In this document: one piece after another, positions 12,306-20,800 of the stretch
Position numbering within the stretch: the first letter of the stretch is position 1
Layout: each line of letters begins with the position of its first letter
IMG/VR virus record: IMGVR_UViG_3300031997_000001
Location: 62,001 to 126,000 of that record
Strand: one strand, 5' to 3'
DNA: 64,000 nucleotides
Notes under the pieces: generated by a model
The model's input: the letters and a program-made list of their open reading frames with translations, nothing else
Database searches by the model: none
Told to the model about the DNA's origin: nothing
Position numbers and translations under genes: made by a program

Positions 12306-13109
12306 CTAGGCGTAGTGGATGGCGATAGTCGGGAAGTACCCGGAATAGTACATGATGTTTCCGGATGACGTGGGGAACGTGTCGGGGAGCGGAGTCCCGC
12401 TCCATGGCATGTTGACGCCGAATATTTGGGAATTCTCCTCGAATTTCTGGTTGACTCCGAACAAGTTCAGATAGCAGGCTGTCATGCCTTGTAGGCTGTA
12501 TGTTCCTGCCGTTGATGGCATGCGCAGGGCGAGCCAATAGATCCAGTTCGGATTCAGGGCTAAGCCGGGATTCATGTTGATAGGCCCGTTCGCGCCGCTC
12601 GCCGAGAGGCCAGAAGCCTGGGTAAGTAGGCTTCCGGGCCATATGTCAGCCATCGTGGCGTCGACATTGTCGTAAATTCCAAGGCAGAAAGACTCGCCGG
12701 ATGCGGTGAAATTCTTATAAAAGCGGAGGTCGTCGATGGTTCCGCCCATTTCGGAACAAATGGGTATTGCATAAATGCACTGACCGGGGAAGCTTGTGAG
12801 GGCTTGAGAGGGAGTACTGTTCATGGCAGTAAATCCGGCAGGATACCAGCGCTGTGCCATGCCACTGGCGCTAAAGGACATGCCGGAGCCGTACCCCTTC
12901 ATCCTGAACCGGTCGTAATCCGAGCTTCCTATGAGATCCAAGCCAGTCGAGTCTACGTTTCCTGAGCATACGGCCGCCAGGCCAATGCTCCCAGATGTTA
13001 TGGCGCCAGAGGCTATAACGCCGATGGTCACACAACCAGACCCGAAGTCTCCAGAGGCCAGTTGCCTCGAGACCATCGCGCCGCTTGTCAGGGATATTGG
13101 TTTTCCCAT
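12306..13109 (-). CDS. Ser-Gly-rich putative virion structural protein (paralogue 3)
   Basis: N-terminal 5-residue GxIxS repeats, then WYPAG..GIYD..P..LL..YWLA..P.TFPT domain shared with the two upstream genes. Confidence 0.7.
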   Translation of the reverse strand: MGKPISLTSGAMVSRQLASGDFGSGCVTIGVIASGAITSGSIGLAAVCSGNVDSTGLDLIGSSDYDRFRMKGYGSGMSFSASGMAQRWYPAGFTAMNSTPSQALTSFPGQCIYAIPICSEMGGTIDDLRFYKNFTASGESFCLGIYDNVDATMADIWPGSLLTQASGLSASGANGPINMNPGLALNPNWIYWLALRMPSTAGTYSLQGMTACYLNLFGVNQKFEENSQIFGVNMPWSGTPLPDTFPTSSGNIMYYSGYFPTIAIHYA

Positions 13110-13931
13110 TTAGAAATAGAATTGTACGTCTGGCACGCTGGCTGCGGTTCCTTCCAGCGTACCAGACGTCGTGGGAAACGGATCGGGCAACGGCCAGGTC
13201 CCGCTCACTCCCCGGTACGATATCATGGCGATGTTTGTTGGGATCATGTTTGCGTCGACTCCCCAGAACTGCAATGGGGCAAACACTCCCTTTAAGCCTA
13301 TGACTGCTCCGGAACCCTGCAGCCACGCAGCCCAGTAGAGCTTATTTGGCGCAAAGGACCAGGTTAGGCCGCTCTCTTCGGTTCTGCCGTAGATTGGGTC
13401 TGGGTATGTTGATTGTCCGCTCATCCGCAACTGCGACGTGCTGTAGAGCAGCGTCGTGGGCCAGAGATCTGAGCCCGCATCATATATGCCCATCTGACAA
13501 AGCCTGCCGTCGTTTCCGTTCTGAGTCTGCCAGACGGCGACTTTCCAGGCAGATAGCGCCCTGCTCGTAGCGAAAGGCATACAGAAGACGCGCATCGTCT
13601 GCGAGGGGCTGAACGTCGTTCCGATTCCAAGGGCGCAGTTATTCTGTCCAGCGGGATACCCCCGCGTCACGTCAAAGCCTGAATGCGCCCATCCCCCGAA
13701 GCTTCCAAACGCGCCTAGCGTGCCTATCTGCCTATAATATCGTTCGAGCTTTGAGCCGCCTGCCCCAGATGCGATATGACCAGACATGACGATAGGCAGG
13801 GCGTTTTGGGTAATAATTCCGCTCGTGATGGCCCCAGATCCCACATGTCCAACATATATCTCACCAGAGATGAGGTCTCCCGAGGAGACGGCTCTGGACT
13901 GCAACGCGCCGCTGTTCAGGAAGAGGGGCAT
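13110..13931 (-). CDS. Ser-Gly-rich putative virion structural protein (paralogue 2)
   Basis: SGAITSG repeats, GYPAG, MGIYD..WPTTLL, LYWAA, LPDPFPTTSG. Confidence 0.7.
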   Translation of the reverse strand: MPLFLNSGALQSRAVSSGDLISGEIYVGHVGSGAITSGIITQNALPIVMSGHIASGAGGSKLERYYRQIGTLGAFGSFGGWAHSGFDVTRGYPAGQNNCALGIGTTFSPSQTMRVFCMPFATSRALSAWKVAVWQTQNGNDGRLCQMGIYDAGSDLWPTTLLYSTSQLRMSGQSTYPDPIYGRTEESGLTWSFAPNKLYWAAWLQGSGAVIGLKGVFAPLQFWGVDANMIPTNIAMISYRGVSGTWPLPDPFPTTSGTLEGTAASVPDVQFYF

Positions 13932-17800: not shown

Positions 17801-20800
17801 GTCCGCGCCCGACGCTTCATGGCAGAAATACTGCGTGCCGTGACAGTCTGCAATCCTGCGAGACACGATGCCATTCATACCGCTGTAAGGTAGGCCACAC
17901 AGCAGGATGCAGCCGGAATATGGCGCACCATATACGGCGCCGAACCTGGAATTATTTATGTCGACCGTCGCACCAGACAACGCAGTGACGCACCAATTTA
18001 CAACAATGCTGTTTATGTCGCAATCCTCTATGCTCGTGATTCCGCCTTGGCAGACAATCCCGGTATTAGATATCAAGCAATGGTCGAACTTACAAGACAA
18101 CGTGAGAGCCGCACCGACATTTAGTACGCTGCCGCTATCGCTCGTGCCATACATTCCAACGTTATTAAAATAGCTTCCTATGAGTGTCGCTTCGTGGAGA
18201 TCAAGCTCTCCGTTGATCATCCCCACCGTACTGCCACTCGCGATGAATTGCGGACCGGAAAAACCTACTGGGGGAATGCCGCCAGTGATAGTAGAATCCT
18301 TGATCCTAAAAGTGGCATAAGCGTCACAGAGTCGACCGACTCTCCCAGTAATCGTGATATCTGTGTTTTCGAGTTCGATAACATCCCCGCCAAGGCCGGA
18401 TGCGTATAGACAATCATGCCTATTTATGGCACAGTTCTCGAATCTTAGTAGTACATCGCCTGCGTTTTGGGACCATATAATTGGCGAACCGGACGCCGTG
18501 CTATTACCATAGAACCTGATGTTCTTAAAGACCTTGGGATATAATGCCCCAGCGCTGTCGTTTATGGAGAATACCGGGACCCCCGACGCACCATAAATGA
18601 CAGTACCCTTGCCAACCGCTGCTAACCCGTCTGGAATTCCATACGTTCCTTCGAATACTATTGGAACAGCCTCCGGCAGGATGACAGTGCCCAGGCCAGA
18701 GCTCAGCCAGTATTTCCCCTCCCTCAAGATGATGGTACCACCTTCTAAATAATGTAGGGCGTTGACCGCCGATTGGATGTCCTGGAAATCGCCATTACCA
18801 GCCGGATCGACTACGAGCGTGGCCGCCCTGGGCCCGACGGCCTTCTCCATGGAGCCCATGAACAGGCCGGAATGACTGGTAGCCTCGCCAATCCTCTGAT
18901 CAATGGCGCCCCAGAGTATGCCAATACCAGCACCACCAGCACCAAGGCTGCCGCTGTACAGCTGGGTCGGCATTTTGCTAATGAGGTCGCCTGACAAGCC
19001 GACCCAGACCGGCTTGCTGATGATGCCGGAGAAATTGAACGTCGTGCTGGAAATCCTGCCGCGATGATATAGCCTGGCATTCTGTCCGGATGCGACGTTG
19101 TCTGCGACTATACCGACGGCGGGCATTCGGCCGGAAGAGTTGGGTAGACCTGAACGTATCCCGCACATCGCGATCTGTAGATAGCCGCTCTGGGTGAAGG
19201 CCACTGCCTTCACACCAGAGATCATCTCGGCAGTCACGAAGTAGTCGTCGACTAGATATCTAGCACTGTCGATGATCGCGCCGGACGCGAAGTGATGCGT
19301 GGAGACTTGCCCGGAAGCGATATTCCCGGAGGTGATAATGCTGCCGGAGTTATATCCGCCAAAGATGTGCAGCCCAGAGTTATTAAGAACTTGGGCGATA
19401 ACTTGCTGGGAAGCCGGGTAGGGCGGTGGCGTGTTTACAAGGAAACCATTATCACCAGACCCCACCCAGACAAGCGAGCCCGGAGCCCAACCAGAGAATG
19501 TAATCCAGTTATTTGGATGGAATAGCTTGCCAAGGACATAAGTCGGCTTTAGCGCGGTATCGGCAACAATGCCAATAGCGGGCATGCGGCCTGATGAAGT
19601 CGCACCAGCCATTATCCAAGTATCAGACACTCCACCGCTGGTGGTTATCGCGACGGCTCTTGGGCCAACAACAGCCGGATTGAATCCTTCTCCCGGAGTA
19701 ATCGTAGAATTTACTACAAGCTCAGTGTTCGGATAGAAGCCGCTGGCGAGTGATCCAGAGACGACTGCGCCGTCGCCGATGAAACCAGAGGTGACGCAAC
19801 CAGAGGTTAATGCTACACTGGGGCCTTGCCAGCCCTGATAGCCTTGATAGCCTTGCCAGCCTTGATAACCCTGGAATCCTTGCAGACCTTGGGTGCCTTC
19901 ACTCCCAGGGCCCTGCCAGCCCTGACTACCCTGGAGCCCCTGCCAGCCTTGATAACCTTGCCAGCCTTGGTTCCCTTGCCAGCCTTGGAAACCTTGCCGC
20001 CCCTGGTATCCCTGCCAGCCCTGATTTCCCTGATAACCTTGCCAGCCTTGGTTCCCTTGCCAGCCTTGGAATCCCTGACCGCCTTGATAACCCTGCAGGC
20101 CTTGGAAGCCCTGCACCCCAAACATTCCCTGCCAGCCCTGCCAGCCCTGATTCCCTTGCCAACCTTGATTACCTTGCCAACCCTGCCAGCCCTGCGTACC
20201 CTGGAGACCTTGCAGGCCTTGCCAACCTTGCCAACCTTGGAATCCCTGACCACCCTGACGGCCCTGAAGGCCCTGCACACCTTGTACGCCCTGGAGCCCC
20301 TGTAGGCCTTGCCAGCCCTGCCAGCCTTGCTGGCCCTGCTGACCCTGATAACCTTGTCCACCGCCGCCTTGCCAGCCCTGATTACCCTGCTGGCCCTGCA
20401 AGCCCTGCCAACCCTGATTCCCTTGATAGCCTTGGGCTCCTTGGTAGCCCTGCTGGCCCTGCCTCCCCTGCTGACCCTGCTGGCCCTGCTGGCCTTGCTG
20501 ACCTTGTAGGCCCTGCCAACCCTGCCAGCCTTGCTGACCCTGCTGGCCTTGCTGGCCCTGATAACCTTGTCCGCCGCCGCCTTGCCAGCCCTGACCACCT
20601 TGTTGACCTTGTAGGCCCTGCTGACCCTGGACGCCCTGCAGACCTTGGAGTCCCTGCCAGCCCTGCCAGCCTTGCTGACCCTGCTGGCCCTGGTAGCCCT
20701 GACCGCCACCGCCCTGCCAGCCTTGCTGGCCTTGCTGACCCTGAACGCCTTGTAGTCCCTGCCAACCCTGATTCCCTTGCCAGCCTTGAGCTCCTTGGTA

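Follow-up and report, generated by a model that had tools for sequence, protein, structure and literature searches.

Ser-Gly pairs in the fibre operon of a metagenome-assembled huge phage suggest a family of trimeric bead modules with a linked glycosyltransferase cassette

Why does serine so often stand directly before glycine in the fibre proteins of one phage? The question arises in the window analysed here, a 64,000-nucleotide stretch that comprises bases 62001-126000 of the 235,458-bp virus record IMGVR_UViG_3300031997_000001 (GC content 57%, CheckV completeness 97%). Its fibre operon encodes a 3738-amino-acid (aa) protein, p3738, in which a collagen-like stalk is followed by a 1670-aa C-terminal tail, and three shorter proteins (p289, p273, and p267) that are paralogues of one another. 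The source is a huge phage assembled from metagenomic reads; Shine-Dalgarno sequences precede its genes, PHROG matches around the fibre region are to tail-fibre, endonuclease, and Mom-like proteins, and it has near-identical and related counterparts among contigs of sediment, soil, groundwater, and freshwater metagenomes. The initial annotation had read the Ser-Gly (SG) dipeptides of this operon as acceptor sites for the adjacent glycosyltransferases (GTs), by analogy with animal proteoglycans, in which Ser-Gly is the core of the xylosylation site, and had conceded that some pairs might instead be structural beta-turns. Our analyses favor the latter: with a probability of roughly 0.6, the excess marks out a large and hitherto undescribed family of phage fibre or decoration proteins, trimeric by prediction, in which SG has a primarily structural role.

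Ser-Gly excess in the fibre operon

Expected SG counts were derived from each protein's own composition and compared with shuffles that kept that composition (2000 for the tail). The tail (window 14813-19822, minus strand) holds 82 SG against 24.6 +/- 4.5 expected (z 12.9), with a shuffle maximum of 43, and its reverse dipeptide, Gly-Ser (GS), occurs 25 times. The earlier hand count was reproduced: the first 325 residues past the collagen carry 22 SG among 40 Ser, about half of all their serines, against 5.9 expected (shuffle z 7.7). The excess spans the whole tail beyond these residues, including two domains resembling beta-helices. For the paralogues, about 14 SG each had been reported for p289 and p267, and p273 had been called visibly SG-rich; the counts are 14 (5.1 expected), 14 (4.2 expected), and 13 (3.8 expected), respectively.

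Across the genome, a scan of 289 open reading frames (ORFs) placed p3738, p273, and p289 as the three largest SG excesses, well above compositional expectation; p267 was left out of this set through ORF overlap, and its excess of about 9.8 would rank it among the top SG proteins of the genome. The remaining 286 proteins, pooled, had an observed-to-expected ratio (O/E) of 1.11 for SG and 1.15 for GS. The globular parts of the second collagen protein of the window, offered earlier as an internal control, do behave as one, if weakly (0 SG against 1.5 expected and 1 against 1.0). A 1226-aa protein encoded 13 kb to the left of the window (genome 48939-52619, plus strand) has 15 SG against 6.9 expected (P = 0.002, uncorrected); it gave no match to the module described below and appears to contain a Hint/intein insertion near aa 150-520.

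A module family in which Ser-Gly positions are the best conserved

A full HMMER search with tail aa 1-330 as the query against 1.84 billion representative sequences returned 273 proteins at E ≤ 1e-3, 153 of them at E ≤ 1e-10. Every one of the best 150 of the 273 homologues was SG-rich (O/E 2.4-5.6, median 3.7); together these held 7903 SG against 2143 expected, with GS at 1.0 times expectation and Gly following 64% of all Ser. The claim that the excess was confined to the fibre operon stands within this genome, but the trait is not peculiar to this phage. Ten homologues that were looked up were all metagenomic and had uninformative names, and a Pfam scan of ten found no domain. Pfam and PHROGs scans likewise gave nothing usable for the tail or the three paralogues, a megablast search of the region against 50,697 phage records gave no match, and a literature search found no account of an SG-rich phage fibre family.

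Iterative searching (jackhmmer and the resulting hidden Markov model [HMM]) defined a repeat unit of about 170-185 aa, of which there are 813 instances in 151 proteins: six in the tail and up to 21 in one homologue. Each module starts with a connector of five-residue repeats, hydrophobic-x-S-G-x, followed by a globular bead, and SG-to-SG spacing accordingly peaks at 5, 10, and 15 residues. In the alignment of all 813 instances, the 22 columns that make up 11 SG pairs were the best conserved of the module, with a mean top-residue frequency of 0.92 against 0.45 in the other columns, so that about 11 conserved SG pairs characterize each connector-plus-bead unit. The Gly columns of these pairs were 94.9% Gly. 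The Ser columns were 91.4% Ser, and the replacements were G (2.6%), A (1.5%), N (1.0%), D (0.8%), and T (0.5%).

The connector is not tied to the bead. The first ~50 residues of p289, p273, and p267 match the connector part of the module HMM, as does no other protein in the genome, and in an alignment of the three (28-31% identity) 8 invariant SG pairs account for 16 of the 41 invariant columns. A word-index search with p289 matched only p289 itself and one relative at 88%. In the virus records G001-G003, the connector is also present without the bead, in long tandem runs. A pentapeptide-repeat identity (A-D/N-L-x-x) for the connector was considered and rejected, as no Pfam match was obtained; against what we take to be the consensus of such proteins, the connector register hydrophobic-A-S-G-x is off by one position relative to L-S-G-A-D.

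Related loci were collected with a degenerate DNA pattern for the motif S-G-R-M-P-A-I/V-G-I/V, which yielded 120 loci; the module was present in 43 of the loci screened, a few of which had been collected before this set. Several loci share small SG-rich proteins of 110-121 aa (L010 4999-5334; L079 8836-9183; L081 1608-1970; L088 3732-4091; L106 5481-5816), together with a 510-590-aa SG-rich protein near a 530-572-aa gene. Pfam Phage_portal matched four scanned ORFs of these loci, probably the 530-572-aa genes, an arrangement that suggests a role for the module as a head decoration or head fibre in smaller phages.

Predicted bead fold and trimer

An AlphaFold 2 model of module 2, the reference module of the tail, built from a 138-sequence alignment, reached a predicted local distance difference test (pLDDT) score of 78, with the bead core above 90. 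Almost all Foldseek matches of this model in the PDB were trimeric capsid decoration or cement proteins of the beta-tulip fold, including those of Adjutor, YSD1, Pam3, HFTV1, and T1, the phi29 gp8.5 base, and SHP; the best-listed match was 8saj (E 7.5e-4, TM-scores 0.48/0.63). Predicting three copies of module 2 together gave a homotrimer score of 0.87 against 0.39 for the best control; in calibration, 20 of 30 solved pairs and 1 of 23 single chains attained this mark. The models therefore predict a bead that adopts the beta-tulip fold and assembles as a homotrimer. PF09956 (Phage_cement_2) gave no Pfam match with the tail or with 10 homologues; for that family there is a language-model lead only.

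The predicted trimer interface comprises connector residues 15-50 together with residues 63-68, 86, 89, 91, 108-111, and 121, and SG pairs lie within it outside the connector as well, at 67-68, 86, and 121. About half of the 14 SG pairs of module 2 touch another chain in the predicted trimer, and the rest lie in loops outside the interface. In the monomer model, five SG pairs of the bead core sit in loops of 2-5 residues between strands.

A structural role for Ser-Gly, and what weighs against it

Four observations together argue that the role of SG is mainly structural: its positions are nearly invariant, the replacements of its Ser are small and mostly lack a hydroxyl, the connector pentads fall within the predicted trimer interface, and its density is independent of the glycosyltransferase cassette considered below. 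The caveat of the initial annotation has thus become the better-supported primary explanation. The family's building block is a connector of hydrophobic-x-S-G-x pentads and a predicted beta-tulip bead of ~120 residues. In p3738, the 2068-aa collagen stalk is joined to six such modules and two putative beta-helix domains, and in p289, p273, and p267 the same connector precedes a different globular domain. For the individual SG pair, we infer a placement either in the 2-5 residue strand-to-strand loops or in the connector that would form the trimer axis; Gly would permit the tight turn, and the small Ser would fit sites that tolerate only G, A, N, or D. SG would then be to this family roughly what G-x-y is to collagen. 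By analogy with the neck-fibre beads of the Anabaena phage A-1(L), p289, p273, and p267 would probably dock head-to-tail as distal pieces.

Several results sit less easily with a structural role. Both beta-helix domains, whose fold is unrelated to that of the module, have an SG O/E of 2.8 each (shuffle P ≤ 0.0006), and the C-terminal domains of p289, p273, and p267, pooled, have an O/E of 2.6 (P < 0.0001; 2.2 for that of p289). Between beta-helix domain 2 and an orthologue 40% identical to it, 10 of 11 SG positions are common; among beta-helix paralogues 21-32% identical, only 1-4 of ~12 positions are, and yet the counts stay at 12-16. In one homologous beta-helix the count drops to 4. This turnover, and the existence of a 4-SG form, indicate that the beta-helix fold does not need SG and that something maintains SG density. 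(A homologue search with beta-helix domain 1 gave no match in the allowed length range.) The C-terminal domain of A-1(L) gp82 aligns with the module, marginally (E 0.005), and does so without SG pairs. Lastly, a transferase specific for Ser would likewise select for nearly exclusive use of Ser and against Thr.

A glycosyltransferase cassette linked to Ser-Gly proteins

The fibre genes are followed on their own strand by a six-gene cassette: a gene for a small GT-A-like protein, a GT4 gene, a gene for a 152-aa protein, a gene for an FkbM-type methyltransferase, a second GT4 gene, and a gene for a multi-methyltransferase-domain protein. The cassette adjoins SG proteins in the window and in 14 of the other related loci that were read. 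Orthologues of all or part of it (37-84% identity) stand beside SG genes in L001, L006, G001, G002, L028, L045, L048, L068, and L096, usually directly downstream of them and 5.6-6.5 kb away in G001 and G002; the GT-A-like gene follows the SG genes directly in most loci. The GT-A-like protein has homologues in 318 clusters. Four of these, selected solely on the length of their contigs, all (4/4) had SG-rich module proteins within 10 kb, with an SG protein immediately upstream in 3/4, and the surrounding genes differed. The linkage is one-way: the cassette always adjoins such proteins, but SG-rich module proteins also occur where no glycosyltransferase was seen nearby, in head-morphogenesis modules next to portal genes or in other settings (L007, L008, L026, L079, L081, L088, L095, and L106), and GT4, GT2, and GT-A-like genes are all absent from the 43-kb record G003. 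SG density in relatives without the cassette equals that at cassette loci (O/E 3.5-4.4). For SG outside the module, cassette-free loci carry too few non-module segments for a comparison with cassette loci.

Two further loci deserve mention. L136 encodes (3-2786, minus strand) a 928-aa collagen-like protein with G-x-S triplets, 173 SG at a spacing of 3, and two globular inserts; it lies ~7 kb from a copy of the cassette and represents a structurally unrelated second route to dense Ser-Gly near these enzymes. L137 (NCBI GCA_038869295.1, a 169.6-kb contig) carries the cassette and an SG-module locus within a metagenome-assembled genome labelled as a Nitrososphaerales archaeon, and this label is either a binning error or a hint at the host.

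The main rival to a primarily structural role puts the sequon first: the exposed serines of SG turns would be the acceptors of the linked cassette, would carry short methylated O-glycans, and selection for acceptors would keep SG dense across unrelated domains. Much of the evidence is what such an arrangement would produce. An orthologous cassette stands beside SG genes in the window and in related loci; in the independent sample of GT-A-like homologues the linkage held despite differing surroundings; the excess extends to beta-helix and tip domains, where positions turn over and the count is kept; the collagen part offers almost no Ser, Thr, or Lys as sugar acceptors; and a (G-x-S)n collagen stands near one cassette locus. 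Ser is used to the near exclusion of Thr, as in the Ser-only heptosylation of TibA, where one site reads N-S-G-G (PMC4358343). Other findings tell against it: relatives near whose SG genes neither the cassette nor any glycosyltransferase was seen have the same SG density, roughly half of the module's SG pairs are in the predicted trimer interface, replacement of Ser by G, A, N, or D points to a constraint on size, and related phages may merely share a conserved gene order. At the 105 SG sites examined, residues ahead of the pair were mostly A, T, G, or L and those behind it A, L, I, or V, and no consensus beyond SG itself was found among the flanks. Nor do the enzymes name their acceptor. The similarity of both cassette GT4 proteins to solved GT4 structures is generic only (for the second, a weak similarity to Gtf1 and TarM), and the GT-A-like protein had no match among solved structures, so the acceptor cannot be inferred from them. 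We regard sequon-first selection as a tentative alternative, with the odds somewhat against it.

Glycosylation and a structural role are compatible. The one-way, context-independent linkage of the cassette, the preference for Ser over Thr, and the excess in unrelated domains make fibre glycosylation likely, and judging from gene content the fibre is probably glycosylated in the cassette-bearing lineage. That the SG serines of exposed strand-loop-strand segments are the glycan acceptors is a reasonable possibility, though short of even odds. The broadest form of this proposal, in which a widespread environmental lineage hyper-O-glycosylates its fibres at Ser-Gly turns by means of a co-inherited cassette with the 218-aa GT-A-like protein as initiator, we put forward as possible rather than probable. 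Of the initial claim that SG marks acceptors for the adjacent glycosyltransferase cluster, the link to a conserved cassette therefore survives; the GT31, GT25, and GT8 genes on which it had drawn are not conserved, and SG is as dense where no glycosyltransferase lies nearby.

The proteoglycan-like version, in which Ser-Gly would be O-xylosylated and a GT31 linker galactosyltransferase would extend the product to a glycosaminoglycan-like chain, has in its favor a GT31 (Galactosyl_T) gene within the window, and we consider it very unlikely. No match to a GT14/Branch xylosyltransferase (PF02485) was found in the 97%-complete genome, and the linker enzymes GT7 and GT43 were not among the glycosyltransferase domains detected. 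The SG flanks are hydrophobic or neutral and show no acidic preference. In tblastn searches, GT31, GT8, GT25, and the sugar C-methyltransferase had no counterpart in any related locus compared, which places GT31, GT25, and GT8 outside the conserved cassette.

An artefact of Ser and Gly richness, of a repeated DNA motif, or of recent tandem duplication is next to impossible, even though these proteins are Ser- and Gly-rich and built of repeats: composition-keeping shuffles reject the first and leave GS at expectation; SG is spelled by 22 different hexamers in which each of the six Ser codons and each of the four Gly codons is represented, which indicates selection on the protein and rejects a DNA motif; and the modules have diverged (BLASTP within the tail found no internal repeat at E 1e-3) with SG nonetheless fixed over 813 instances.

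Organization of the locus

The features of the fibre operon, the cassette, and the sugar genes beyond it are collected in Table 1. In the translation of p3738, the collagen region consists of uninterrupted G-x-y triplets in which Ser, Thr, and Lys are nearly absent; the Pfam Collagen model was applied solely to the other, second collagen gene. The two beta-helix-like domains (~385 aa each) sit between pairs of modules. The first opens with a 10-residue motif and is homologous to the beta-helix domains of P0026 and P0010; its motif and strand pattern make it look like a beta-helix. For p289, an AlphaFold 2 model from 8 sequences had a pLDDT of 30, and for its tip domain there are language-model leads only, to lectin-like or Mtd-like folds.

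Table 1. Fibre proteins, their domains, and adjoining sugar genes (window coordinates)
Feature	Coordinates	Strand	Basis or content
p3738, 3738-aa fibre ORF	14810-26026	-	collagen aa 1-2068 plus tail aa 2069-3738
Collagen-like region, p3738 aa 1-2068	19823..26026	-	translation; triplets mostly G-x-Q
SG-rich tail, p3738 aa 2069-3738	14810..19822	-	six connector-plus-bead modules, two beta-helix domains
Module 1, tail aa 5-139	19406..19810	-	jackhmmer domain match, E 1.7e-19
Module 2, tail aa 146-330 (reference)	18833..19387	-	SG pentad connector, then predicted beta-tulip bead; AlphaFold 2, Foldseek, homotrimer score
Putative beta-helix domain 1, tail aa 331-715	17678..18832	-	12 SG against 4.2, P = 0.0002
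Module 3, tail aa 722-830	17333..17659	-	jackhmmer
Module 4, tail aa 834-982	16877..17323	-	jackhmmer
Putative beta-helix domain 2, tail aa 986-1364	15731..16867	-	12 SG against 4.3, P = 0.0006
Module 5, tail aa 1365-1507	15302..15730	-	jackhmmer
Module 6, tail aa 1501-1648	14879..15322	-	jackhmmer
p289	13931..14800	-	SG pentad connector ~aa 9-43, ~240-aa globular domain
p273, p289 paralogue	13110..13931	-	SG count; alignment
p267, p289 paralogue	12306..13109	-	SG count; alignment
GT-A-like protein, 218 aa, cassette gene 1	11593..12249	-	weak Pfam Anp1 and GT2; PHROG glycosyltransferase matches
First GT4, with LAGLIDADG intein of ~455 aa	9184..11580	-	Pfam
152-aa cassette protein	8963..9421	-	orthologues in L001, L006, L045, L048
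FkbM-type methyltransferase	8340..8966	-	Pfam; orthologues in L006, L045
Second GT4	7297..8823	-	Pfam; 508-aa ORF as listed
Multi-methyltransferase-domain protein, 557 aa, last cassette gene	5627..7300	-	Pfam; orthologues 45-61% identical
Further sugar genes and two unknown proteins	491..5616	-	Pfam
Sugar C-methyltransferase	4402-5616	-	Pfam
GT31 (Galactosyl_T)	3139-3885	-	Pfam
GT8	2418-3152	-	Pfam
GT25	1234-1884	-	Pfam

Two gene starts in the cassette differ from the listed ORFs. The GT-A-like gene, seemingly overlapping p267 as a 349-aa ORF starting at 12642, has its true start at ATG 12249 after an AGGAG. The ORF of the second GT4 overlaps the FkbM gene by 484 nt, and since most of its orthologues align only from ~aa 156, translation probably begins near 8358; the longer frame is, however, open in L006 too, where it aligns at 39% identity. 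The intein of the first GT4 spans roughly aa 250-705 and has Hint, LAGLIDADG, and intein-splicing domains, and the orthologues in L001, L006, L012, L028, L045, and L048 are intein-less and contiguous across the insertion site. A weaker match to FkbM (28% identity) occurs in L081, a locus otherwise without the cassette. Elsewhere in the window, a 1230-aa protein (38073-41765, minus strand) with five separate GT2-domain matches and a match to a galactosyltransferase N-terminal domain adjoins the second collagen operon; its 1220-aa multi-GT2 homologue in L135 lies downstream of the cassette. A 521-aa protein (56292-57857, plus strand) has HNH/homing-endonuclease matches and a Mom-like DNA modification domain.

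The collagen genes call for some care. A different sample yielded a near-identical contig, L003/L060 (Ga0315294_10005498, 13.9 kb), on which the large fibre gene is called as two separate genes of 1188 aa and 928 aa, which probably reflects collapse or breakage of the collagen repeats in assembly; a possible collapse also advises caution over the exact collagen length in the window. The second collagen gene (27476-34663, plus strand) encodes 2395 aa, including a globular insert of 254 aa and a C-terminal domain of 167 aa; in the listed ORF, aa 1-336 abound in R, D, and H and have a non-coding look, so that its true start is probably later. Very long frames on the strand opposite the collagen repeats or in their other reading frames (for example 19810-25974, plus strand, 2054 aa; others fall within 19800-34300) are not genes but shadows cast by the G-x-y repeat. 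The strong GC and AT skew at 20-34 kb is likewise due to the collagen repeats.

Significance and relation to known systems

The beta-tulip fold, the idea of a chain of beads, and the glycosylation of phage virions are already known; the SG-signature module family, its pentad connector, and its dedicated cassette are new. The family, which has neither a name nor a Pfam model, comprises at least 273 clusters at 50% identity from phages of soil, groundwater, sediment, and freshwater, and its simple SG signature lets annotators call these fibre and decoration genes. The SG pentad connector with its predicted beta-tulip bead would be a new fibrous building block. Should the cassette indeed glycosylate the fibres, a broad group of environmental phages would join the few mycobacteriophages as cases of virion glycosylation, here with a defined acceptor motif, and this would be the first sequon-defined protein glycosylation for phage fibres, placed on folded strand-loop-strand motifs like those used by autotransporter heptosyltransferases.

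In predicted structure, the closest relatives of the bead are the beta-tulip decoration and cement proteins (lambda gpD, phage 21 SHP, Phage_cement_2, phi29 gp8.5 base, YSD1, Pam3, and Adjutor), which share its modelled fold and form homotrimers as predicted for the SG bead; some SG relatives also hold the decoration-gene position next to the portal. The SG bead differs in having no sequence-level Pfam match, in being preceded by the pentad connector, and in being concatenated. In overall design, the nearest counterpart is the neck fibre of phage A-1(L), in which trimeric beads join head-to-tail via N-terminal hairpins and the distal bead differs (PMC10966104). The chain gp82/gp81/gp80 resembles our tail followed by p289, p273, and p267, which may dock in a comparable way; the module profile matched residues 122-239 of gp82, its C-terminal bead, marginally (E 0.0054). 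The beads of A-1(L) are separate proteins, whereas six are fused here in one chain with collagen and beta-helix domains, and the C-terminal bead of gp82 has no SG pairs at the aligned positions.

With respect to glycosylation, mycobacteriophages encode glycosyltransferases that glycosylate their virion proteins (Freeman et al. 2023, cited in PMC12619734); the passage of PMC12619734 that describes this work places the glycans on C-terminal extensions of capsid and tail-tube subunits and mentions neither an SG motif nor a fibre.

Serine-rich repeat (SRR) adhesins offer a closer parallel in gene arrangement, in that a GT4 pair (GtfA/GtfB) is encoded beside a Ser-rich repetitive surface protein, as here. 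That system acts on Ser-rich repeats that are disordered and leave the cell by an accessory Sec route, whereas the substrate here would be folded beta-modules, and the GT4 similarity is generic.

The closest functional precedent for glycosylation of SG serines, by analogy, is heptosylation by the bacterial autotransporter heptosyltransferases (BAHT). These belong to a different enzyme class: no match to a GT9 heptosyltransferase (PF01075) or other BAHT-type enzyme was found in the genome, which instead has GT4 enzymes and a small GT-A-like protein, and the modification proposed here is hypothetical. In TibC-TibA and Aah-AIDA-I, only Ser is heptosylated, in loops of a repetitive beta-structure, and at least one of the mapped sites falls within an N-S-G-G motif (PMC4358343). 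The SG fibre resembles these systems in presenting many Ser, not Thr, as candidate acceptors in short loops, next to genes for putatively modifying enzymes, just as the cytoplasmic GT-B enzyme of the autotransporters is encoded beside its substrate.

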